A stretch of 64,000 nt of DNA. Source: Chlorokybus atmophyticus (taxonomy: Eukaryota > Plantae > Mesostigma and Chlorokybus algae). This document shows positions 1-56,146 of the stretch, one piece after another (the first letter of the stretch is position 1; each line of letters opens with the position of its first letter). The translations under genes were made by a program, and so were the position numbers. Under the pieces are notes generated by a model, which had not been told where the DNA came from, searched no databases, and saw only the letters and a list, made by a program, of their open reading frames with translations. The stretch lies in assembly GCA_009103225.1 (NCBI GenBank), contig RHPI01000193.1:678650-742649 (forward strand), given 5' to 3'.

Positions 1-187
1 CATATCATAGGTACACACATTCACAAGGGTCAGGACTTGGGGCCGCCATGCATGCATCCATGCATGCATGAAGAAGAGTTGAAGCAGGCGCCAACACAAG
101 GACGAGGACCCAACACACACACGAACTCTTGTCTGTTCGGGACTTGTAACCATGCAACAGCCTGGGCGTGCTTCCTCTTTGAGAGAC

Positions 188-1297
188 ATGCATTCCAGGC
201 TATTTTCCCCTCTCCTCCTTCTCCTCTTCTTGCTGCTTCCCCTGCATGGCACCCTAGCCAAGGTGGCCGTCGTGGGCGACGATAGCTGGACTATCCAGGA
301 GGGCAGGCCGGACTACCAGGTAGAGAGTGTGTGTGCGCGCGTGTGCATTGATTGTGCATGCATGTTGGGGTGTGCTCTCGTTAGCTTAGGACGTATACAC
401 TGGGAAAACAAGATATACACGCAGCAGACGGCGCACACACACACACACACGCTGGCACGCTCTGCATGCTTTTACAGACACGCACAAGCACACGAACGCA
501 CGCACAATCACGTGTTCACCCCCCCCACCCCCACCGACACACAGCTACACCTGTAGCTACCTAACTGCGTCTCAGGAGTCTGTGCTGTGTTCCTGTCCAG
601 GCTTGGGCGGACATCAACGCACCGTTTGCGGCGGGCGACACGCTGGTCTTCAACTACCAACCGCCAGGTACGAGCGAGCAAGCGCGGCTTGTTGTGTTGA
701 GGCTGCACGCCGTTGGCTCAACCTAACTTTTCATGCAAGGCAATGGCAATGACTTCGAAGTTGACAACATGTCTGCACGCGTGTGTGTTCAGGTGTTAAT
801 TACACGGTGTTTCTTGCGCGTAGCAACGCTACCGTCGCGCAGTTCTGCGCATTGAATGGCTTCCTCTTAGCAGGCAAGGCTAGCACTACTAATCACTACT
901 CACTGCTGCCCCTGTTTCTTCATGAGTTTTTCTCACTCACTTCCTCATGTCTGATGTTTGTTGTTTTCAATTGATACACACGCAGGGTCGCAAGCCACGG
1001 CCCCCTTCCAGTTCAACTGGACCGTGCCTTCCGATGGCCAGTTCAACGTCACCTCCATCATACAGGGTACGTGACACTGCTATGCAGACACACACACCTT
1101 GTCCAGCAACAATACTACATTTTTACAACAAACACACGTGCACACAAGATGCACACCTAATCGGTTTTATGTATAGTACCTGTGTCTAGCAGATGAAATG
1201 CTTATGTCTAGCAGGTACATGCGCATGATATGCACACATACCGTGTCTGAATTTGTCTAGCAGATACACACATACTTCACAAGCGCACGCACACATA

Positions 1298-1338
<41 letters not shown>

Positions 1339-3482
1339 CCACACAGGCCAGTGCCTCTCCGGCCTCCGCTTCTTTTTCGTGGCCCTCCCCGCCCCCGCCC
1401 CCGCCGCCGCTCCCGCCCCGGGCCCAGTCCCCCTTGCCCCTCCTCCTGTCCCCCCAGGACCTGTCCCAACTCCAGGACCAGCTCCCACTCCTGGACCTGG
1501 CCCAGCTCCTCCTGGTGCTGCTCCTGAACTTGGTCCTCCTGGACTGGCCCCAACTGCCGGTCCTGCTCCTGTACTCGGTCCTGTTGCAGGTCCTGTGCCA
1601 GGGTTTGGTCTTGTCCCCCCGAGTCCTGGACCTGGTCCTGTGCTCGAGCCGAGTCCTGCGCCAGCTCCTGCGCCGGTGCCGCCCGTGCTCGCGGCTCCAG
1701 GGGGACGAAGTGAGTGGTGGTAGTGTGTTGGTGATGTTATTGAGGAGCTTTTCTGCTTATGTGTGTTTGGTGAATGTGTGCGTGGCTGCTTGTGTGCAGG
1801 CTGCAATGTGACGCAGGGCTTCTTTCTGCCGGATGGGACGGGACCGCTGCAAGTCACTTTCGGGTTCAATACAGCGGGTACGTTACTTGTAGTAACCCTG
1901 CATTTGCACGCGCACACACAGACGCATGCTTACATGCAGACACGCCCAAACACGCACACTTGCATATACTCGCAAGCGCACATGTACACTCCCGCGCATC
2001 GTACGCATGCGTTTGCACAGCAACACCCACTCACCTACCCACCCACCCCGCCTCTGACAGACAACGGCACCAACCTCACCTACACGGTCTCTCGCCCTCC
2101 CTCCTCCCTCTTCCCCCTCCAGTTCTTCAAGGTCGAGGTGGACGACTTGCTCCCCGTCAACACCTCCCTCATCACCTGGGGCCCCATGACCAACCCCAAC
2201 AACAGCGTCAACGTGCTCCTCATCAACGGCAGCAACTTCTTCCAGTGGAACTTCGGCTTCGCATCAGAGATGGATGATACAACAATAGAGTATTCGGTAC
2301 TCTTGCCGGATGATAGGAGCCTGCTGCTGGCGCCGGTGGGAGTGGCGGTGCAGACCAATACCTCGCAAACGGCCGAGACGCTGTTTAATGGGAGCGTATG
2401 TGGGTTTGCACCATTCCCGGAGTTCCTGTTTGCGCCCCCGAGCCTGGGACCCGGTGTGGGTCCTAGCCTGGGTCCCAGCCCGGGACCCAGCTTGGGGCCA
2501 AGTCTGGGCCCCGGCCCGGGACCTGGACCTAGCTTAGGGCCTGGTTTGGGACCCAGCCTGGGGCCGGGACCTAGTCCTGCGGGTGCGCCTGGTGTGGAAG
2601 GTCCCCTTGCTGGTCCCGGGCCTGCACCGGGACCGGGATCGGGATCGGGATTGGGACCTGCACCTGGACCATCTGTACCAAGTGAGTGAGACACTTAAAC
2701 CTATATACACGTGTGTGTATGCGTGTCTGCGTGAGTGCGTGTACGCTCATATTGGCGCTCTCTCTGCGTGCGTGTGTGTGTGTGTGTGTGTGTGTGTCAC
2801 AGGTTGTGACTTCAACGTCATGCTGTTGGGCCCGAACATATCGGACTTTACCGTATCATTCATGCCTGAGGTGCTGACCAACACCAGCAACGCCACGTAC
2901 ACGGTCTCGCGCAACACTAGCAGCCCATTCCCGCTAAACATCGCCTTCTTCAAGGTGATGTTGTGTCAAGTTGTAAAGATATGGACTGGTATCGTACATG
3001 ACACACACATGATGGCTTCAGGTTGAGGTGGATGATGTGTTCCCCACACCGGTGAACTTATCGACCTTCCCGTGGGGTCCGAAAAGCAACGGCATCAGCA
3101 ACAATACGGCCAACTACCTGCTCATCAATGGCACGAACTTCTTTCAGGTGACTGCACTGTGCGAGCTGACACACAAACACACACACACACACACGCGCGC
3201 GCGCGTGCACACGCACACACTCTATGCAGTGGAACTTTGGTTTCAACACCACCACCGACAACCAAACCACCTTCTTCGTGGAGCTTCCTGAGACCAACCT
3301 GAGCATCATCAACAGGCAACTGCAGGTGTGTGCATATATGTGTGTTTGCCGCTGTGTCACCCCACTCAACTCCCTTCACTCACTGCCATCTGATACATAA
3401 TGTATTGTGTCTGCAGGTCCAAACTGCTGTGATAAACGGAACACTCATCAACGGGACCATATGCGGGTTCGGCCCGCCGTGA
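188..3482 (+). CDS. Secreted phytocyanin-like (Cu-ligand-less, ENODL-type) chimeric arabinogalactan-like protein with two repeats of an unassigned ~140-aa domain; 11 exons, ~620 aa
   Basis: Exons 188-319, 601-667, 793-873, 986-1066, 1347-1709, 1800-1877, 2061-2681, 2803-2954, 3022-3147, 3230-3325, 3417-3482 splice in frame (1863 nt). Signal peptide MHSRLFSPLLLLLFLLLPLHGTLA; plastocyanin-like motifs VVGDDSW, W..INAPFAAGDTLVFNY, GQCLSGLRF; AP/GP-rich linkers. An upstream in-frame ATG at 152 is an alternative start. Confidence 0.85.
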
Positions 3483-3975
3483 CGAGCAGATTGTGTAGCC
3501 TTTGGCCCAATGTGTTGTTAATCTTGTAAGTACAGTGCAGTGAATAAATAGGAACAGGGATGGGGACCTCACACACACTTTGTAAGATATGGACTTGAAT
3601 GTTGTTGGGCTGTGCTCTCTCTGTTTGCGTTGTGTGTTGTTTCCTGGTGATGTTAGTTTCATTGCCTGTTGCTTGCTGTGCTGTCTCTCTTTTGCTGAAT
3701 TCCCCTTAGAATTGACCAGTATACTCCACATGTGCGTGTACACATATGTCAACATAGCGATTTTCATGCACATATACAGATGCGTTTGTGTATTTGTCAA
3801 TGTCCAGAAAGTAAAACCCTTCCTACTGTTGCCTCCGCCGCGCCACGAATGGCACCCCGAGCCTCTGCGAGTAACTCGCCAACATCTTCTCATACTCTGC
3901 ACACACATACACATACACATCTCGTGAGTGTCTGTTGGTATGATGGTGCGGGACGGTACCCAGACTTGACCATCA

Positions 3976-6900
3976 TCCAATCAACTGAGACCTTGTATAC
4001 AAACACACTGCAGTTGACTGTGTGCGTATGTGCGTGCGCACACGCGCGCGTGCGTGTACATTGTGTCCACGTGTATATTGTGTCGCGGTTGCACACTGCT
4101 GTGCGTGCATGCATGTCACAGCCATATACACGACTGCACTACCCCACACGCATTCTCCTCACCTTTACAGGCCCTCTTCAGTTCGCCATGTTCCCCCTTC
4201 ATCTCCTCGATCTCCTCGAAAAACGCCGGGTCCAGGGCCGCGAGGTCCTTCTCAAGCTGCCCGTTGCGTGCACGCAAAGAACGCACCTCCTCCACCATGG
4301 AGGACCACTCGCGCGACAATTGATGGGCGTTCAACGGAGGAGTGGACATGGACGAGTCTCTTGAGGTTTGTACAGGGGATGACTCGAGGTCGAAGAGACG
4401 CTTGCGAAGCCTTCTTAGCTGTGTGGAAGCAAGCAAAGCGAAATTGCGAGGCGTTGAGAAAGGTGTTAAGCTGTTTGACACAGACACACACGCACGCGCG
4501 CGCGCGCGTGTGCACACACTTTGGTACTACTTTGCGGACCAAGATGTAAATATGTGTGGTGCACGCACGCATGCACCGGGTACTTGCTTGATGTGTATCA
4601 TCATCTCACCTCTGCCACCATTGCGTCCCTCTCTCCTTCACCCTCATCGCCCTCCCTCTCCTCCTCTTCCCTATCCCGCCCCTCAAGCTCCCTCTCTCGC
4701 TCCTCCAACTCACGCTCTCGGGCCGACAGCGCCTCCCGCAGCTCATCTCCCTCATCACGCGCCGCATCTGCAAGGTGGAGTGTGAGAGTGTTGGTGTGTT
4801 GTTGGTTGGTGAAGTGTTGGGGTGTTGTGGTGTACCTTTGGTCTGGGCGAGGTCGGCGCGGGTGGACTGGAGCGCCTGCTCGAGCTTGGCGCAGGCGTGC
4901 TTGAGAGCTTCGTTGCTTGCGTGCTCCTGTCGTCACAACACATCAGCAACATGTATCAGTGAATCAGGTATTCAATCACCCCTTGTTGCAATACTCACTC
5001 TAGTGTGCGCACAACAAGGTGCGTGCGAGAGATCAAGTAGCACGTACCTGAGCCAGTCTCGCCCGCAGACGCTCGTATCGCTCTTGCGTTTGCGCGGCCT
5101 GACTCACGATGCTCTCACGGGTGGCATCGCGCCTTCGCAACCTCGACACCTATACAGCAAAACACGTTGAAGCCAACATATACAACAATACACAACATGC
5201 ACACATGCACGCGCACGCCAATACGCACTTATGCACACACACACGCAAATGCACACAAGGGCGGTTCCGTGTGCGCGCACGCGCGTGCACACGCACGTTC
5301 GGTCAACATACACAACTCTTCAAGTCTAATGTTGACTCAACAAAAATTAGTCAATCAACCAGACGATCAAACATTCAGTGTTTTACCTCGTCTTCCAGAG
5401 CTTCCACCTTCTGAAGCCTCAGCTGCTGACTCTTATTCACCGCGTGGGCGTTCTTGAGCTTGTCGATCTCTCCGCGCTGGGCGTTGATAACTGCGGCAGC
5501 ACCGACACAAAGAGAGTTAACAAACACATCATCGAATCATGTGTCATGTTCCAACTGAATCAAACCAACACACCTTCGTGTAGGCCTCGCAAGGAGCCAT
5601 CACTGTGTTGTGTGTCGTTGTGTTGGGAGGAGGAACCCAACATCTCTCCTGTTTGCACAGCGAACTCCTCCTCATCGCCAAAGTTGTCACCAACGTTGCC
5701 ACTCGCTGCCGCGCGCTCCCGCAGCGACATGTTGTGGCTGTCTTGTTGCTGTTGTTGTTGTTGTTGGTGGTGGTGGTGCTGCTGTTGCTGCTGCTGTTGA
5801 TGTTGATGTTGTTGTTGGCGTGTGGAAGCCAGCTGGCGCTCTAGAAGCTGCACGCAGTGCTCGGCGCGCACGCGCTTCTTGTCGCTCTCGGCAAGCTCCC
5901 CTCTCAACTGTGATGTATGTGTGTGTATGTGCGTGTGCGCGTGCATACACACACCATATTCCAACACGTTCACATACCTGTGAGAGTTGCTTTTGCAGGC
6001 CGTCAACCTGCCTCTGCACTCGCTTCTCCTGCGCCCACTTGCCAACGCTCTCCATGGCAGAAACCTCCTCCTCCTCATCACCTATCAACCACTCCATCAC
6101 GAATTCCACCCACCCACTCGCACATTCCACCCACCCACACACGCACGCACACTGCCCTCACCTGCATCAGTTGGTCCAACCGCATCACCACCCTCTTGCT
6201 CAGCCCCCAAAGACGAGGACTTCTTCTGGCTGCGTGCCATCAGCACCTGACCCAAGCGAACGTCAATAACTCTAACTCTTCGATGAGAATCGGATTGAAT
6301 CATGTTTTGGGTGATTGAGAGGGTGTGTGAGTGTTATCTCTCACACACCTTTATCCTCTTCTCTAGCTCTGGGACGCGCGGGTCCCCCTTAGCCTCGCGC
6401 CCGAGGCGCTCGAGCTCCTCTCGGGCCTTGGCCGCAGAGTCCCTACGATGTGGTGTGGGGTGAGTCAGGAAGGAAGCAACCTTTTACTTCTAGAGGTTGT
6501 TGCTTTGCAAAAACAGTGGAAGTGACTAGCATGAGCAGGAGAGGGTGCAGTAATGTGTAGTAGCAACAGTGGTAGTTGGAGTTGAAGTAGTAGTAGTTGA
6601 AGCAGTACAAGTAGTAGAAACAGAGTAGAAATAGGGTAGAAAACTGTTGTGATAGTTGAAGTAATAGCAGTAGTAGTTGTAGACGACGTAGAAGTAGTTG
6701 TAGGAGTAGAATGTAGCAGTTAAAGTAGTACTACAACAACTTTTACTTCTACTTCCATCAGATAATAAAGGTAGAACTATAAATAGTAGTAGTAGAAGTG
6801 GTAGTAGATGCAGTTCAAGTACTGACTTGCTTCACGTGCAAAAGGCCAGGACAACATTTATAGCCCACATCCAGCACGTAGGCAGGCACACCCGCACGCC

Positions 6901-15289: not shown

Positions 15290-17750
15290 TTTGGTAGGAA
15301 CCAGGGTTATGCTAGTGTAAGAGGAGCATCCAGTAGCCTTTGAGAGTTTCAAGTATAAGCCCGCGGCGAAGAATTACTCGACCACCTATCACGAATTATC
15401 AGGTGTTGTGAAAGCGTTGCATAGATGGAGGTATTACTTAGAGGGGAGGCATTTTAAGGTGATAACTGATCACAACCCCTTAGTGCACCTAAATACGCAA
15501 CCTAATTTGTAGCGACGCCAAGTAAGGTGGCATGAGTATTTGATGCGATATGATTTTGATTGGGAATATAGGCCAGGTAGGAAAAAGGCGGCAGATCCTT
15601 TAAGTAGGCATCCCGCATTATCCGAGGATTTGGCGTTACTTGCATTGGATTATGTGAGTGACATTCCTAACCAAATAATCGCAAGTTATACTAATTGCCC
15701 GGAGTTCCTTTTGGAATTCAACCAAGTGTTAAAACCACATGGGGCATTTTGGTATAAAGATGAAGAAAAGATTGCGGTTCCAATGAATGGGTCACCTAGG
15801 TCAAAGGTGATTGAAGAATCACATAATCCCCCTTACCATGGCCATTTTGGTATAAGGAAAACTACCGAGCTTTTGGCTAGGAGGTATTGGTGGCCGACCT
15901 TAAGAATTGATGTCGAAAGCTTTGTAAAGAATTGTGACTCATGCCAAAGGAATAAATCCGTAAGGATAAAACCGGCCGGAAAATTACAACCTTTGCCCAT
16001 ACCAGAGGGGGCTTAGAAGTCTATGTCTGTTGACTTCATAGTCCAATTACCTAAAACGGTAAAAGGGAATAACGAAATGGTTGTATTTGTAGACCGGTTT
16101 AGTAAGGTTGTTCACTTAGAACCAACTCCTCCAAAATTTACGGGCGAGGATTTGCCCATGCCTTTTTCAGGATATGGTACTCACAACATGGGATGCCCGT
16201 GGATATGATTTCGGATAGGGATTCGCGGTTCACTTCCGCCTTTTGGCGTGAAGTATGTGATACATTAAATTGAGATAATAAGTTATCCACCGCGTTTCAT
16301 CCTCAACCAGATGGGCAAACCGAGCATGTGAATCAGACAGTGGAACAACTATTGAGGCATTACTCACTAAAGAATATTAGAGATTGGGATACATATCTCC
16401 CTTTCGTTGAGTATGCCATCAATGATTCGGTGAATGAGTCAACGGGGATGACACCATTTGATATTGGTTATGGCCGCCATTTATTAAGTCCAGTTGAGGC
16501 TTTAATGGAGAATATGGGGGCTAGAAAAAGAGTCAACCCCTCGACTCAAATTTTGGCTCAACGATTAGGGCAGGTGCAAAATGAGGCCAAGAGGGCCTTA
16601 TTAGCAACCCAAAATCGTATGCGTCAATATGCCGATGCCAAGAGGGCAGAGGCCGTGTTTGAAGTGGGACAAGAAGTCCTACTTAGCACAAAGAATGTGA
16701 GGATGGAGTTTCTCGATGGGGCCCGAAAACTATTACCCCGATGGCTTGGACCATTTAAGGTAATAGAAAAGATAGGGGCTATGGCATTCAAGTTAGAATT
16801 GCCACCGAGTCTTAAGATACATAATGTATTTCATGCCTCGCTATTGAGAACCTATCACTCAGATGGGTCGGTGCAGCCACCACCACCCCCAATGTTTATA
16901 GAAGGAGATTGGGAGTATGAAGTTGAGGGTATAATAACCCACAAAGGCCGGAAAGGCAGATCTCCCAGTTACTTTGTGAAATGGAAGGGTCATCCGTTCG
17001 AAGCATGTGAATGGGTTGACGAACCTAACATGCGATCACCGCTTCTGATAAAGAAATATTGGAGGGAGCTAACGGTTGCCCAAAGATGAAGTCCAGGTAG
17101 GTCCATTTCTGAAAATATATATTTTCCGCCTTTAGAAGTAGTTCCACGTTTTGACCTATCAAGTCACTGATCATGGCTTGTTTTCCTAGGTTGGAAAGCG
17201 TGGAGAAAGAAATTGAGCAGAGACGCTCAATAACTAAAGGGGGGGCATTGTTACGGCCTAGCTACTACAGCTGGTCATGTACAGTGTATATATAAGTTTA
17301 ATTAGCGAGAGACAAAAGTTTAATGAACCTTGGTTGGATTATCTTGGTTTGTTATACAAGCTTTGAATGCGTGTGTTTGTGTTTGAGCTTTAACACGAAT
17401 GCAATGCATCGCTAATTATAGGCCTGGCTAGTTAGAGCATTTGCATGCATCTAATTAGAAGTGGTTGACTAGGAATTACCCTATTCATGAATGTATGGGC
17501 GTCTTGAGTAGGAAGATAAAAGCACATGGCTTTAGTATAATGATTTATTAACGCGCTGTGGGCTTATGGGGCCAATCGCGTGAAACATCATAGGAAAAAG
17601 CATGTGTAATTATAAGGTTCATTTAGGCCAATCCAAGGCGGCTTATTTGGATCAGATGAATAGAACGAAGTAGCCTACCTAGGGTGAACAAAAAGGACTT
17701 CGCGAAATGAGTTCGCGAAGGGGTTGATTCACCTGCGAAGTGAATCAACA
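15290..17750 (+). mobile_element. Truncated, degenerate Ty3/Gypsy chromovirus: RNase H-integrase-chromodomain, PPT and one LTR
   Basis: RNase H (ITDHNPL...RWHEYLMRYDFDWEYRPG), integrase zinc finger (HNPPYHGHFG...CDSCQ), core (SVDFI...VDRFSK...DGQTE), GPF motif, chromodomain (YEVEGI...YFVKWKG...EW) ending 17089. In-frame stops near 15508 and 16014 plus frameshift. PPT aaaggggggg 17236-17245; LTR TGTT...AACA 17249-17750. Confidence 0.9.
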
Positions 17751-18449: not shown

Positions 18450-19520
18450 GCCACTACTTTGGCAAACAGGTGGCGATTGGTGTACATGCCATGTGCGCTT
18501 CTGAGAGGATTGTGTGCATACAGAGTAGAACGGATTGCGTGTGTATACATATCTGTTTATGGTCATATAAACGTATCGGATACGATGCAGTTTACAATGG
18601 ATAGATCTGTGGCATGTACTGTTGCATCAACTTGAAAGGTTTGATTGCCCTGGACCCTGACGTTCAATGTGTAACATATATGCAATGTTATGCATGTGAC
18701 CCCATTGTGTTGTTTGCTGAATGACTTGGCTGTTTCGTGAGCATGCAAGTTAGCCTTTGGTTAGGAAACAGACCCCAATGAGGTAAAACAGCCAACAACC
18801 TGTGAAATTGACACATCAGCTCTGGCGTAACTCATGATCAGCAGGTTTTCATCATTGCAGATTGCAAAACCGCCCCGTCGCATTGCTCCGCGTAAGAAGA
18901 ACGGTATGCTGAGTACGCAGTCTGCGTAACTGCCGAACAACTGCTTAGCCTCATGGAGAACTGATGCGGTCATTGAGGGTTGTGTAAACAGTACTTGTGA
19001 GCTCACCTGATGAACTTGTAACTGAGTTAGACACGCATACATCGCCGGCGTTGAACGGCGCAGTTGTGTTCGCCCAGCTCTGACAATGTGAGTGCGTGTG
19101 TAAGCGCGCATGCATCTGTGTGCATGCGTGCGTGCGTGCGCACACGTACATGTCCGTGCTTATGTCTGTGCTCATTGCAACGAGCACTTGTCTGTGTACA
19201 CCTGCACGCGCATGCACATGTGTGTGTGCGTGCGCATGTGCGTCTGCGTGGCTGACAACCATTCCCTCCCATAACAAGTTGAAGCAAGGACTTTGCACCA
19301 CGCGCCATCAACACATCTGGTACTGCTCGTGGTCTGGTTCTGGGTTCATGACTGCGGAGGGAGGTGCCTAGCCAGCGTCATCCGGCCTCGGGCCGGTAGA
19401 GGTCGGCAACCTCTACCACCCAAGCAGCCGCGCCGGCAGGGTGCAGCAGGAGAAGCAAGCTCACCGCTGTCGTTGTGAGCACAGCACTGCTGCAGCTGCT
19501 TGATGGAGACGCTGCTTCAT
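18450..19520 (-). pseudogene. Phytocyanin pseudogene (paralogue of 25768-27087)
   Basis: Same exon order as the intact copy (SWANTTAPFNAGD; HTVLLTRSNAT; VQGNQTFQVDATVH...NCIVS). Frameshift just after the ATG, GT->AT donors after exon 1 (taccag|atgtg) and exon 4 (tccg|atacg), frameshift and stops in exon 3. Confidence 0.8.
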
Positions 19521-21382
19521 GGCTGCGGAGAAGGTCGCAACAAGCAATGAGACAGAGAGACTGCGCGAGCAGTGTGTGCGTTATGCCTGCACAAATATGC
19601 ATGCATGTGCAGAGGGAGGCCAAGTGTAGATGTCATGACTGGTCTGACACGATTGCTGAGCTGGTGTAGGCCTTAACCCAGCGCAAGCCAGAGTGATAGC
19701 CTGTTCACTGTTACGGTCTGTCGCTTGGCTCGGACTGTGTCGGACACAAAGCGTATGCTTGTTGACTACTTGCATTGCGCTTGCAAATGCACAAGGAGCC
19801 AAGTACACATCGAGTGGTCGACTTGACTGCACGTAAGCAACCTTGCTTGCAATCTCAACACACAAACAGCGTCGTTTTTGTGTTGCAGTGCACTGCCTGC
19901 ACAAGAAGCAAACAAGAAACCAAGCGTCAACCATGCTTGCGACCTGGAAACCACACGCATGCATGCGCTTCTCAGCAGTTTTGGTCAGCGAGAACTATCC
20001 GGCACCTGCATGGCTGCAAGCTGGCACCCAACGCAACGCAGTGCTTCGCAGACTGCCCTGACTCAAGCCACAGAGTGCACCAAGCAAGCAAGCTAGCACC
20101 TCACCTCGACCTGATCCTTCGTCTTTGCCTCCCGCAGAATCGTCACCACCTGCCGCCTAATGATTCCAAGCCAAGCTAAGCTCAGCTTAAGCTTAGCGAA
20201 AGAGCGAAGCGCAGGTCACCTAAGCTAAGGCATTAAGGCACTGAACGTATGCGTTTCAGGCAGTTGATGCTGTCATGTAGCAAGTTGACGCGCGCGCAAA
20301 GCGCATTAAAATACTGATTGCGCTTATTCATTGCGCGCGCAAAGCGCTTGCGTTAAGTGCCTTGATTGGTTTGAAACCTCCGCACAGTCACACAGTCTCT
20401 CGACTCAGCTTTGCCATAGCTGCCAGTGGCTTTGACATGGGTTCGCGATGGGTGAGTGGAGAGAGTGTCTCCACGCCTTGCAGGCGGTTGGTCGGCTTGA
20501 TTGGTCTGAAAGCTCAACTCAGCACAGCTCGACTCACCTCAGCAAAGTTTGCCTTTTCAAGCATAGCTGAGGCAATGCAGTGCCATACTTGCGAGTGGCT
20601 TGTAGAACATGGTTGTTCATTGGATGACTGGAGACAATGCCCAAGTCTTGAAGGCGGCTAGTGCTCGGCTTTGCCGAAGTCGACAGAAAACAAGGAGGTT
20701 GAGGTGAGCTTAAGCTACAGCCCCTCAGCTGAGCTGGCTCAAGTTTCACATATGTTCAGCAAAGCTTTACAGAAGCATTCATGCATGCGCCTGGAAAACT
20801 GTCGCTCAAGCAGCGTTACAAGCAGTGTAGCAAGCTTGTGTAGGCAGCGCGCTTGAAAGCAAACAGCACTAATGCTAACCGTGCAAGCCATTTCGCCAGC
20901 GTTCCTTATGCGTTTGGTGCAGTTTGTTACTGCGTGCGCATAGATTCAGCGAGTGGTGTCCACAGTCTGTCGTTGTGCAGCTCTTTGCACTAGTGTAGTC
21001 TTGGTGTGTTGTATGTGTTTTGCCGGTGTGTATATCTTAGCGCATGTGTGTGATAAAATTGTGCGTATCACTGGTTCGTGTCTGGCGAGGGGTAAATGAA
21101 GCGCAAGGGAACACCAGGAGCTGTGTGGATGTGTGCACGGGTGCATGCAACTAGCTTTGATTGAGACAAACAGAGGGAAAGCAAGCTACGCAGGTGGAAG
21201 AAGGAGGATCTAGTGGATTGGTGTTGGGCTGGGGTTTATCTTTCTCAATGAATTGCCCTGAGCTCTGGCAAGTAGTGTTCTACAGTGGTTGTTTCAACTC
21301 TTTCTTCCCACCGACAACCACACACCCATGGCCACACACCCATGGCCGCGCCCACACTCAACCAACATTCCTTGTGCAGAGA

Positions 21383-25767: not shown

Positions 25768-27087
25768 TTACTTTCCGTGCTTGCCATATCCGTGACCGGA
25801 ACTAGCAGGAATGGGAGGAGCGCGTGCGGGACCTAGAGCAGGGGCAGGACCGTGACCAATCTGTGGCGGGAGGACGATGAACCAGAAGCGCAAGCCGGCG
25901 GGGCAGTGTCCTGCATATAGAGAGAAAGGTGGTGTTGTTAAGTTTCAGCTAGTTTCAGCTGTTAGATGCAATACTCATGGTGTAATTACAGCTGCGTGCG
26001 CGTGTCCTGACACAAGAGAGATGCATGTAGCACCTCATGTCTTTTTTACGCATGCAACACGCATGAAAGAGTACAAGAACCTTGATAACAAACAGGACCG
26101 GCACTGCTCAGCAGAGGCAGCATGTGTGTGCGTATGACTGCGCTATAACACAAGCGTACCTGGCACAATGCATGTTACATTCCATTGGCCTCTTGCGGGT
26201 ACAGTCCAGTTGAACTGGAAGGGACTGGTGGCCTGGGATCCTGTCATTGAGCGTGTGTTTGGTATTTGGTTGGCTAAATGTCTCAGCAATAGCATGAGAA
26301 CATGCACTATGTGTGTCGGAAAAGAGACACAATCAGCTGGATAGTTGAATCCTTGTGGTTTTGAGAAATCACAACTACGCCAGGATTTGATTACCAAAAC
26401 TATACTCACCGTTCAGCAGGTTGCCATTTCCAGCATTGCAAAACTCCTGCACCGTTGCATTGCTTTGGGCAAGGAAAACGGTATGCGGGATACCTTATGA
26501 ACACAAGGGTTTGTAAGCGAACAAATGCCTAGCGTCATGCAGATGTTGAGAATCTAGACACAGCACTTGCCAATTACTCAGTGTGCACAGTGTGCTTTTA
26601 CCTGGTGGTTGGTAGTTGAACACAAATATGTCGCCAACGTTGAACGAACCATTCGTATTCGCCCAAGTCTGCCATTGTCAGTACATGTGGATGAGCACAT
26701 GCTTCTGCGTGCTCGCACGCGCGTGTGCACACCGTTTGTACGCGCGTGCGCACACCTTTTGTTGTTGTGCGGGTGCTTGTAAATGTGGATTTCTGCGTGC
26801 ATGCGTGTGTGTGGGGGGGCATGTGCATGCGTGCTTATGTGTATATGCGTCTGCGTGCCTGCAACCACTGCCCACCATGACAAGTTGCAAAAAGCAACTT
26901 TTATCATGCGCCATCAACACACCTGGTAGTCTGGTTCAGGGTTGATGAGTGCCCAGCCAGAATTGTCCGGACCGACGACCACCACCCGAGCAGCCGCGCC
27001 GGGAGGATGCATCAACAGGAGAAAGAGGCTCACTACTGTCGTTGTGAGCACAGCAAGGCCGCAGCCAAGCAATGGAGACTGCTTCAT
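25768..27087 (-). CDS. Phytocyanin (plantacyanin-like blue copper protein), secreted, 5 exons, 179 aa
   Basis: Exons 27087-26923, 26668-26602, 26493-26410, 26240-26160, 25910-25768 (540 nt). Signal peptide; VVVGPDNSGW; TWANTNGSFNVGDIFVFNY; PHTV (His); TCIVPGHCPAGLRF (Cys, His, axial Leu); disulfide pair FCN/GHC; short Pro-rich basic tail ending GHGYGKHGK*. Confidence 0.88.
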
Positions 27088-41221: not shown

Positions 41222-41546
41222 GATGCTGGGCCGGCCTGGCCTGGCCTGGCGTTAACGCCCAGGCTAGAGTCTGGCCTGGGTGCCTTTCAGTCCAAAAATG
41301 CAGTAAACAAGAAAGAGGGTCACCGCATCCCAGCGCTAACAAAATATAATATATAACTTACCACCGTTAAGCCACGCTGGTTCCATGATCTAGTGGTTAT
41401 GATGTCAGACTCTGAATCTGAATGCCCGAGTTCAAACCTCGGTGGAACCTTGGAGATCATGCCCTCAAGATGAGGGTGCACACCTGATGCGGCTTTTGCT
41501 CTTGATGCTGGCAAGCCTTTACTTATTTCTTAGCACATTGTCCGCA

Positions 41547-46334: not shown

Positions 46335-48689
<2,355 letters not shown>

Positions 48690-53627: not shown

Positions 53628-56146
53628 ATGACGCAAAGTGCGCTGTGGAAGCACGTCGACATAATAGAGAAAAAGCCTCATGGCAACTTTCGTGTGAGGT
53701 GTGTTTATTGCGAGCACGAGTGGACAGGAAGTGTTTCACGTATTGGTGCCCATCTGAGTGGTGAACGTGGAGTCACCAAGTGCACAACCCCTCCCGAGGA
53801 GATCGTCTTGCAACTTACACAAGCCAAGAAAGACAAGGAGAAAGAGGGTGAGAAGAGGAGGAGGTTGGACTTGCTAGATCAACTCACATCCGCCATTGGG
53901 GATGCTGGTGCAGGTACTTGAATGCATGCGTGCATGCATTGAAGCTTGGCAAGCAGTGGTGCTGCTCATCACGCATCAAATCAATCACATTGTGCTATAG
54001 ATTCAAGCGCCACCGTTCCTTCTAGTCAACAACAAACTCTTGATGCAACTTTCAAGCGTGGGGATAAAGCGCATGTGGATGAAGCCATTGCTCGGTTTTT
54101 CTTCAGCAATGGCATCCCCTTCAACGTGGCAAGGTCCCCTTACTTTATCGCAGCAATGAAAGCGGTTGGCAAGTTTGGCGCTTCATATACCCCTCCCTCA
54201 TCCGAGGCGCTTCGCACAACCTTGTTGGAAAAGGAGTATGCTAGGGTGAATGGCGAACTTGCAGTCATCAAGGACTCAACACGAGAAACCTCATGCACAA
54301 TTGCTAGCGATGGATGGTCGGACACGTCCAACCGTCCATTGTTGAATGTGCTCATGGTGAGTCCTAAAGGAGAAGTTTTTCTTCAAGCAATCAACACGGA
54401 AGGGAAGGAGAAGACGGCGGAGTATGTATCCGAGCAGCTGATCTCCACCATTGATGAAGTAAGTGGTGCACTCGTTCATTGCCATTATAGATTGTGTACA
54501 CAACCATGCTAAGTAACACATGCAAGCACTGACTGGCAGCACTTTATGAGCACATGCATCACACGCGCATGCTCATGCTCGCACCCGACACAAGTACGCA
54601 TGCGTGTGACACATGCATGCACTGACTGGCAGCACTTTGTGAGCACATGCATTACACGCGCATGCTCATGCTCGCACACAACACAAGTACTTATGCGTGT
54701 GACACATGCACGCACTGACTGGCAGCACTTTGTGAGCACATGCATCACACACGCATGCTCATACACGCACACAACACAAGTACTTATGTGTGTAACTTGC
54801 AGGTGGGGTCCGCGAATGTGATACAAGTTGTCATGGACAATGCAAGCGTGTGCGTAGCTGCTGCACGTCTGATCACTAGCGAATACCCGCACATCACATG
54901 GACGCCGTGCACCGCGCATTGCTTGGACTTATTGCTTGAGGATATAGGCAAGTTGGAGTGGGTTAAAAGCGTGGTGGCTGATGGCAAACGCATAGTGAAG
55001 TTCATTACCAACCACCATCGTTCCTTGGCCATCTTCCGCTCCAAAGCCAAGCTAGAGCTGCTCAAGCCAGGTGAAATAGCATGCGTGCATGTGTGTAGTT
55101 AGAGATCAACTTAGTACAAGCGCAAGATTAATGGTAGACAGCAACCATGTGAAATTGCAGCTGATTGCCCGCGCATGCATGCATGCTCATGTCATGCGCG
55201 TGCTTGTTTGCTCATAGCTACTTGTTGTGCAGGAGATACTCGCTTCGCAACGTCATTCATAACTCTTGCAAGGCTAGTCGAGGTCAAAGACGCTCTCGAC
55301 GAGGTGGTGGTGAGCAGGGACTGGAAGGCTTGGGCCGACAAGGGTGTGCATAAGCAAGAAGCTGCTGCAGTCAGAGCGTTGATCTTGGCACCAGATTTCT
55401 GGTCACAAGTGGCATTAGTGAATGCGGTGTCGGCCCCCATCGTGGATCTGCTGCGTTTGGTTGATGGGAACTTGCCCACCATAGGCAAAGTGTACGCCAA
55501 GATGTTTCGTGTTGGCGACCAGCTCAAGCATCTGAAGGGCATGACTGAACAACAACGACTTGATGTGCGCGCCTGTTGGAGGGACAGGTGGATCATGCTG
55601 CATAGTGACATGCATGCAGCAGGCTATGTGCTGGATCCCGAATATTGGGGTCATGAGCAGCACACCAATGAGGAAGTTATGGAAGGCTTTGCAACGATGG
55701 TGGAGAGGGTCCTGCAGTCCCATGACAAGGTTGACTTGGCGTTGCAACAGCTACACATGTACCGAAGTAAGATGGGGCTGTTCGGCAAAGAGGCAGTGCA
55801 ACGAGCGGCTCTCACAATGCCCGCGCATGCTTGGTGGCACATGTATGGTGGTAGTGTACCCGAGTTGCAGCAGCTAGCGATGCGCGTGTTGGCTCAACCA
55901 TCATCAGCTTGTAGCTGTGAGAGATCCTGGAGCACGTACGACTTCATCCACTCAAAGAGAAGGAATCGGCTGCAAGCACGCAGGGCAGAGAAGTTGGTGT
56001 TTGTCTTCACCAACTTGAGGCAGCTGAAGAAGATCCACAACCCACATTATGTGCAGGAGTTTGTTGAGTGGGAGGCAGACTCTGATGTGGACGTGTTGTC
56101 TAGTAATGATGATGAGGGGGGCGAGTCTGATGATTACTCGGTGTAA
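53628..56146 (+). CDS. hAT transposase (BED finger, DUF659-type DDE core, dimerisation domain), 4 exons, 641 aa
   Basis: Exons 53628-53913, 54001-54458, 54803-55070, 55233-56146 = 1926 nt, open. WKH...CVYC...HL...C; SDGW; VMDNA; CTAHCLDL; TRF; YVLDP; SACSCERSWS; SKRRNRL. Confidence 0.93.
54517..54790. repeat. 3 x 93-bp minisatellite filling transposase intron 2
   Basis: gactggcagcacttt recurs at 54531, 54624 and 54717. Confidence 0.9.

Follow-up and report, generated by a model that had tools for sequence, protein, structure and literature searches.

What kind of protein is encoded by the gene that opens a 64,000-nucleotide stretch of Chlorokybus atmophyticus DNA (NCBI GenBank assembly GCA_009103225.1, contig RHPI01000193.1, positions 678,650 to 742,649 of the forward strand; hereafter the window, with its first letter as position 1)? 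Chlorokybus belongs to the earliest streptophyte branch, and its cell packets are glued by a sheath, the protein components of which are, to our knowledge, essentially unknown. A first-pass annotation of the window, made from the letters alone, had proposed two repeats of about 140 residues, of unrecognised family, fused to a phytocyanin-like protein. Here we show that these repeats, domains A and B, represent a small, so far undescribed domain family, detected only in Chlorokybus and in one environmental fragment. The locus (152-3482, + strand) is, on balance, probably one nuclear gene for a secreted, modular glycoprotein of the hydroxyproline-rich type, belonging to the wall or sheath and carrying binding knobs on proline rods.

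Gene model and layout of the protein

Three-frame translation of positions 1-3600 and splice assembly gave a gene model of 11 exons, with an open coding sequence of 1899 nt encoding 632 aa. All the peptide strings quoted in the first-pass annotation are found in this translation, and the 11 exons that it had counted can be assembled into a predicted model with consistent splice sites and an open frame. The span that it had given (1800-3482) runs exactly from the first base of exon 6 through the stop codon. The parts of the gene are as follows.

152-319 (+): exon 1, with ATG at 152 (alternative in-frame ATG at 188), encoding the signal peptide (..LLLLLFLLLPLHGTLA) and the phytocyanin-like domain's first strand
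601-667, 793-873 and 986-1066 (+): exons 2-4 (601-1066), phytocyanin-like (cupredoxin) core; GC donor after 793-873; Tyr in place of the first His ligand; Cys97 opens the phytocyanin disulfide pair
1347-1709 (+): exon 5, final phytocyanin-like strand (GQCLSGLRFFFVAL; Ser/Gln/Leu at the Cys/His/Met ligand positions), then directly rod 1
1800-1877 (+): exon 6, start of domain A (S-C-NVTQGFFLPDGTGPLQVTFGFNTA), preceded by a phase-1 intron
2061-2440 (+): first part of exon 7 (2061-2681), remainder of domain A (..TYTVSR..FFKVEVDD..WGP..LLINGSNFFQWNFGF..VQT..NGSVCGF)
2441-2681 (+): second part of exon 7, rod 2, 80 aa
2803-2954, 3022-3147, 3230-3325 and 3417-3482 (+): exons 8-11 (2803-3482), domain B and stop codon, preceded by a phase-1 intron; three internal phase-0 introns, none of them in domain A
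3525-3529, TGTAA, and 3543-3548, AATAAA (+): candidate polyadenylation signals 3' of the stop codon, read from the letters and putatively functional

GT-AG borders are found in nine introns; the remaining one, after exon 3, is GC-AG with a typical donor (CAG/GCAAGG). All acceptors are (C/T)AG, preceded by pyrimidine- or CA-rich tracts, and the introns are 67-281 nt long and rich in CA/GT dinucleotides. The GC content at third codon positions (GC3) is 0.67 over the whole coding sequence.

The join between the phytocyanin-like part and domain A is the critical point of the model. Exon 5 carries the last phytocyanin-like strand and rod 1 in one piece, and intron 5, which alone separates rod 1 from domain A, is 90 nt long, has the splice signals GTGAGT..CAG and is of matching phase 1. 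Neither a Met nor a signal peptide precedes domain A itself, so fusion is the parsimonious reading. Judged by the matching intron phases and the lack of an independent start, exons 6-11 would be spliced to the phytocyanin exons.

Exons 6 and 7 together (1800-2681; domain A plus rod 2) measure 699 nt, a multiple of 3, and form a symmetric 1-1 cassette, which fits the duplication or shuffling of a 'domain plus rod' unit. Domains A and B have no internal intron position in common, so that their duplication is not recent. Two variants of the transcript can be read from the model. Were exons 6 and 7 skipped, the reading frame would be kept and domain B would be left as the single A/B-type domain, possibly in an alternative isoform. 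Intron 6 (1878-2060, 183 nt) is in frame and stop-free, giving a continuous open reading frame (ORF) at 1763-2689, and its retention would insert 61 His/Thr/Pro-rich residues within domain A; at that place domain B lacks both intron and insert.

The predicted product consists, in order, of a signal peptide (aa 1-36), a copper-less phytocyanin-like (cupredoxin-like) domain (aa 37-146), the AP/GP-rich rod 1 (aa 147-253), domain A (aa 254-406), the SLGP-rich rod 2 (aa 407-486) and domain B (aa 487-632), directly followed by the stop codon. The signal peptide is the only strongly hydrophobic stretch (peak at aa 15-36). The protein ends in ICGFGPP, and, as the C-terminus has no hydrophobic segment, there is no signal for a glycosylphosphatidylinositol (GPI) anchor. 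The dumbbell without a GPI tail, and the GP/AP rods described earlier, are thus borne out, one Pro/Gly-rich rod preceding domain A and the other lying between A and B.

Rod 1 (107 aa) is 41% Pro, 16% Gly and 64% PAST (Pro, Ala, Ser or Thr), with 14 AP, 11 GP, 6 VP, 2 SP and 2 TP dipeptides. It has no SPPP motif and resembles the rods of arabinogalactan proteins (AGPs); its DNA, in exon 5, contains imperfect tandem repeats of 18 and 6 nt. Rod 2 (80 aa) is built of (S/G)LGP/GPGP repeats, with 32% Gly, 31% Pro and 19 GP dipeptides, encoded by imperfect tandem repeats of 12, 36 and 42 nt.

The many N-x-S/T sequons pointed out in the first reading number 8 in domain A and 12 in domain B. The expectation for the two domains is 6.0 +/- 2.1, and none of 2000 composition-preserving shuffles reached 20. 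This excess suggests that the sequons have been selected for, as expected of a secreted, heavily N-glycosylated protein.

The N-terminal domain scores 20.4 bits against Pfam Cu_bind_like (PF02298), 0.4 bit below the threshold of 20.8. Its assignment is aided by a paralog in the same window.

25768-27087 (-): stand-alone phytocyanin paralog, exons 27087-26923, 26668-26602, 26493-26410, 26240-26160 and 25910-25768, ~179 aa

This paralog, ~22 kb away, scores 22.1 bits on Cu_bind_like, above the threshold. It is 62% identical to the N-terminal domain, and the positions and phases of its four introns are identical; it has a short Pro-rich tail, no GPI signal and no A/B domain. It is the likely donor of the N-terminal module, or else its sister. 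When a profile built from both paralogs was searched against PDB, the top-ranked relevant matches were mavicyanin (E=3.3e-4), cucumber basic protein (6e-3, nearly full length), stellacyanin (0.012) and plantacyanin (0.82), so that the phytocyanin-like character first proposed for the N-terminal part is upheld by both lines. The phytocyanin-specific Cys pair is present, Cys97 (QFCAL) and Cys135 (GQC) aligning with the ..TCN.. and GHC of cucumber basic protein. The copper-ligand positions are occupied by His/Cys/His/Leu in the paralog and by Tyr/Ser/Gln/Leu in the studied gene, which identifies its N-terminal module as a copper-less, early-nodulin-like (ENODL-like) phytocyanin domain. The first 253 residues have all the features in the bioinformatic definition of a phytocyanin-like AGP (PAG) except the GPI signal, namely the signal peptide, the PAST-rich rod 1 and the AP/SP/TP dipeptides (for the definition see PMC5266747).

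A third, degraded phytocyanin copy lies at ~18850-19600 (-), adjoining retroelement sequence. It consists of signal-peptide and domain fragments broken by stops and frame changes, and is probably a pseudogene.

Family and predicted fold of domains A and B

BLASTP aligns domains A and B over 123 residues at 50% identity (E=6e-32), with 66 invariant alignment columns that include a Cys at each end, in agreement with the two Cys-bounded repeats seen at first. One Cys lies two residues into the domain and the other in the terminal (I/V)CGF motif. These are the only two Cys per domain, and the Cys-to-Cys spans are 139 residues in A and 140 in B. Neither domain contains His.

No Pfam-A family was matched at E<=10 by domain A, domain B or their three relatives (P0002, P0003 and P0004, described below), except for noise (DUF5626, E=0.5); this includes DOMON, fasciclin and the other Pfam extracellular domains. 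Sequence-profile search of PDB likewise gave no real match for the A/B domain. The one apparent hit, CroV588 (E=7.7e-5), was rejected as an artefact, as its score adds up 12 weak matches between the NFGF motif and FGxxFN repeats, the best single stretch having E=4.8. The FNIP/FGxxFN repeats of CroV588 are ~22-residue leucine-rich repeat units that form a solenoid (PMC9525666); membership of A/B in that repeat family was rejected as well, the models described below being beta-sandwiches and not a solenoid.

Relatives were sought by an exhaustive phmmer scan of 1.84 billion protein representatives, using as query the contiguous exon-7 translation, which covers 126 of the 153 residues of domain A. 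The scan gave 11 proteins at E<=1e-3, three of which are true relatives: P0002 (9e-12), P0003 (4e-11) and P0004 (8e-11). The remaining eight (P0001 and P0005-P0011) were rejected: they are long repeat proteins of bacteria, and their match comes from biased composition. Of the relatives, P0002 is a fragment of 109 aa on a metagenome contig of 1 kb. P0003 (352 aa, Chrsp30S04757) and P0004 (354 aa, Chrsp69S07390) are C. atmophyticus EukProt models; in each, a signal peptide is followed by two copies of the domain with a Pro-rich linker between them, and there is no phytocyanin part. Further searches added nothing. A scan of metagenome contigs gave 565 pattern matches and no further relative. A word-indexed protein search with the A+B and 7-domain alignments found nothing, a weak negative, as P0003 and P0004 are in that collection and were also missed.

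P0003 and P0004 are paralogs from the same genome, so that the dumbbell is the standard architecture of the family; they too have no hydrophobic C-terminal tail. Each of their domains is 26-27% identical to domain A, with both Cys, the WGP and the NFGF block in common, and some copies carry two extra Cys. Whereas the studied protein has long AP/GP rods, their linkers are short and poly-Pro, and they contain only 1 and 3 N-glycosylation sequons vs 24 in the studied protein. The hyper-glycosylated, long-rod form therefore appears specific to the studied gene. An alignment of seven domains retains the N-terminal Cys, T(Y/W)xVxR, F(F)K, WGP, INGxx(F/Y)FQ(W/F)NFGF, a Y..(L/F)P strand and a terminal NG...G.(I/M)CG. 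The family can be recognized by T(Y/W)xVxR, FFKVxVD, WGP and LxINGxxFFQWNFGF, together with a Cys near each end.

The layout had been called reminiscent of pherophorins, and that likeness stands: in the studied protein and in its paralogs two homologous globular domains flank a Pro-rich rod in a secreted product. Membership was examined by sequence, profile, Cys pattern and layout. PF12499 (DUF3707), the pherophorin family, was matched by none of A, B, P0002, P0003 and P0004 at E<=10, while in the same library two genuine pherophorin domains matched it at 5e-37 and 6e-29 (128 and 102 bits). Eight genuine pherophorin domains (Supplementary Table S1 of PMC9818292) were then aligned, and hhalign of the 7-domain A/B profile against this 8-domain profile gave a probability of 0.8%, over 8 columns. 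In this pherophorin alignment six Cys are invariant, the final two belonging to CCP, and most copies have more, vs two in A/B. Together, the negative PF12499 result, the negative hhalign and the differing Cys pattern do not support pherophorin membership, and the resemblance is architectural; no solved structure of a pherophorin came up in the searches of PDB. The Pfam search, the hhalign comparison and the PDB sequence search thus returned no confident full-length match to a known domain, and the family remains as unrecognised as the first reading had it.

AlphaFold2 models were built for domain A (exon-7 part, with five relatives) and for the second copy of P0004, a complete domain (with six relatives). 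The former has a mean predicted local distance difference test (pLDDT) score of 78.7 and a predicted template-modeling (TM) score (pTM) of 0.75, and is all-beta, with eight strands. The latter has pLDDT 80.0 and pTM 0.74, and is all-beta, with nine strands; all five of its models score 76-80. Foldseek against PDB gave no match at E<=1e-3 for the truncated domain A model, and 24 matches for the complete P0004 domain (E 1e-4 to 1e-3, TM 0.50-0.59, 7-11% identity). These include YcnI/DUF1775, an accessory domain of GH20 hexosaminidase, Candida Als adhesins, cohesin-like modules, BslA and the receptor-binding domains of macroglobulins. As the matches are spread over unrelated superfamilies, the domain can be described as an 'Ig-like beta-sandwich' of the sort used for binding and adhesion, and nothing more specific. 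A library of viral structures gave weak, generic Ig-like matches only (TM <0.45). The beta-sandwich proposed at first is in keeping with both predicted models and with their generic Ig-like neighbors.

Two closer affiliations were tried and rejected. In YcnI, copper-binding His are a family feature. Membership of A/B in YcnI/DUF1775 is contradicted by the missing His, and the likeness is at the fold level only (TM 0.50-0.59, 7-10% identity). Descent of A/B as a decayed copy of the protein's own cupredoxin domain received an hhalign probability of 0.5%, and no cupredoxins are among the listed top 50 Foldseek matches. A local echo was seen between phytocyanin aa 101-121 (LLAGSQATAPFQFNWTVP, exons 3-4) and the A/B core motif (LLINGSNFFQWNFGF; 2213-2270 and 3115-3250), and is treated as chance because of that low hhalign probability.

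Proposed role and rival explanations

The wall of Chlorokybus is thin and its sheath extensive, with AGP epitopes, and these AGPs have been shown to be components of adhesive mechanisms (reviewed in PMC10762512). From the features described above, we infer that the Pro-rich stretches of the protein are hydroxylated and glycosylated and would act as extended spacers. The beta-sandwich heads, each possibly closed by a disulfide between its two Cys, would act as binding knobs, for glycans of the wall or sheath or for each other, possibly through the conserved aromatic cluster. In that way the molecule would cross-link or space out components both of the thin wall and of the AGP-containing sheath, the sheath being what keeps the sarcinoid cell packets together, as a functional analogue of the volvocine pherophorins that is not itself a pherophorin. 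As to origin, a dumbbell cassette bounded by phase-1 introns was likely joined behind a locally duplicated phytocyanin gene.

Several points weigh against this reading. The exon 7 product has no match of at least 50% identity in a protein library that includes the Chlorokybus proteome, so that the gene appears to be missing from the public Chlorokybus protein set and may be unannotated. The GP-rich rods are not classical AGP or extensin glycomodules, which makes Pro hydroxylation uncertain. The structure models were built on 6-7 sequences only. In the P0004 model the first 13 residues, including the N-terminal Cys, have pLDDT <50, so the disulfide is proposed from the conservation of the Cys pair. 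The fold matches obtained with these predicted models are generic and say nothing specific on binding.

The alternative that survives best, possible but carrying clearly the smaller share of our confidence, is that A/B is a carbohydrate-binding module (CBM) in the strict sense, which would make the protein a bivalent lectin for a specific Chlorokybus wall polysaccharide, not a self-assembling scaffold. The conserved aromatic-rich motifs (WGP; FFQWNFGF) resemble sugar-stacking platforms, and a cellulase CBM is found among the fold neighbors beside the cohesin-like modules and GH20 accessory domains. However, no CBM family is matched by sequence, and the fold matches are equally good to adhesins, to the hydrophobin-like BslA and to the copper-binding YcnI. 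This explanation is a sub-case (a specialization) of the binding-knob reading rather than a competitor of it.

Land-plant ENODLs are reported to act together with receptor kinases, and the protein could also be mainly a signaling molecule, its copper-less ENODL-type domain engaging a surface receptor while A/B only tether or present it in the matrix. The loss of three of the four copper ligands, with Leu as the axial residue and the fold-defining Cys pair kept, is indeed the ENODL signature. We nevertheless hold this to be improbable, since the protein lacks the GPI anchor that ENODLs normally use at the membrane, and P0003 and P0004 have the A/B dumbbell without a phytocyanin part, indicating that the A/B pair functions without it.

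Just as improbable is an error in the gene model, with exons 1-5 forming one gene that ends in intron 5, and the A/B exons representing a separate gene, a pseudogene or unexpressed DNA. Read-through of intron 5 would meet a stop after 3 codons (..GGRSEWW, stop), leaving a plausible short phytocyanin-AGP like the 25768-27087 paralog, and the missing library match to the exon 7 product points the same way. Against this stand the shortness, the good splice signals and the matching phase of intron 5, and the lack of a Met or signal peptide in domain A, although the paralogous domains are always secreted. In addition, in all six A/B exons the frames are open, the splice sites canonical and GC3 high, with the 66 invariant columns, including both Cys, retained, and the excess of sequons argues for selection on a secreted product.

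That A/B is a very diverged pherophorin domain, and the protein a true streptophyte member of the pherophorin family, is suggested by the common layout, by a similar size (~140 aa, vs 155-170 aa with 129-133 alignable in pherophorins; PMC9818292) and by a loose 'K-[IV]-E' strand echo (FFKVEVD vs LHKIEFN), and is made highly improbable by the profile comparisons and Cys patterns given above.

We thus retain the reading of binding knobs on proline rods. A wider proposal is that a matrix toolkit specific to Chlorokybus, built from the A/B domain, arose independently of the volvocine pherophorins, and that the present gene links this toolkit to the ancestral phytocyanin/ENODL module and supplies the core protein of the AGP-reactive adhesive sheath around the cell packets. 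We put this forward tentatively and regard it as unlikely in so full a form; if true, proteins of the 'two knobs on a proline rod' type would have been invented convergently at the base of the streptophytes.

Neighboring features and comparison with known systems

The rest of the window contains a few recognizable features. Exact look-ups of three of its long ORFs retrieved no record.

~4150-6100 (-): neighboring gene for an apparent coiled-coil protein with a long Gln/His-rich tract (CAG/CAA repeats at ~5750-5820)
16328-17089 (+): ORF for the integrase C-terminus of a chromovirus-like long terminal repeat (LTR) retrotransposon, with an SH3 domain of the Tf2-1 type and a chromodomain; the GC content of the surrounding 14-18 kb region is lower (0.42-0.46)
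41379-41450 (+): single tRNA-Gln (anticodon CTG; Rfam, 64 bits), the sole Rfam family at gathering score in the window
46335-48686 (+): DCAF8-like WD40 gene
55175-56146 (+): 323-aa ORF with a hAT-family C-terminal dimerization domain (E=1e-12), a hAT transposase remnant or copy; no identical product in the contig collection

The C. atmophyticus JGI/EukProt model Chrsp99S08502 maps to the DCAF8-like gene as a collinear series of seven tblastn blocks. Identity is 99-100% in five blocks and 59% and 86% in the other two, which overlap near 48054-48549. A 331-aa WD40 ORF within it (46729-47724) has this model as its best match (99% identical), followed by streptophyte DCAF8 proteins (~50%). The window is thereby identified as C. 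atmophyticus nuclear DNA, from scaffold Chrsp99 of the JGI assembly or from a near-identical strain.

Lineage-restricted extracellular domains in Pro-rich glycoproteins are common in algae. The protein described here is of this well-known kind, a modular, Pro-rich extracellular glycoprotein with globular heads, while its domain family is undescribed and very narrowly distributed. As a predicted secreted, hyper-glycosylated, three-headed rod protein, it provides a concrete candidate for a sheath component, and with it a handle on how the matrix of Chlorokybus is built.

The N-terminal part is best compared with the PAGs and early nodulin-like proteins (PF02298), which likewise have a signal peptide, a phytocyanin fold with the Cys pair, lost copper ligands and a PAST-rich, AGP-like region. 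These are usually GPI-anchored, whereas the studied protein has no GPI signal and continues for 380 more residues after rod 1, comprising two unrelated beta-sandwich domains and a Gly-Pro-rich rod. It appears that in this early-diverging streptophyte alga the phytocyanin/ENODL-type module was already entering new combinations with other extracellular domains.

The heads A and B are of the same general fold class as the Ig-like modules of YcnI/DUF1775, the Als N-domains, the cohesin-like modules, BslA and the GH20 accessory domain, but differ from them in sequence (7-11% identity, with no sequence-level link).

The closest parallel in overall design is with the pherophorins of Volvox and Chlamydomonas. 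These are also secreted glycoproteins of the extracellular matrix, with two homologous globular domains and a Pro/Hyp-rich (Hyp, hydroxyproline) rod between them, and they too form a lineage-restricted, multi-copy family with domains of the same order of length. They differ in their rods, which are (S)Pn in pherophorins but AP/GP and SLGP in the studied protein, and in their distribution, pherophorins being volvocine chlorophyte proteins while the studied gene is from a streptophyte and encodes an extra, phytocyanin-like head. The pherophorin-like design accompanied multicellularity in Volvox, and the protein described here would provide a second, independent example of it.

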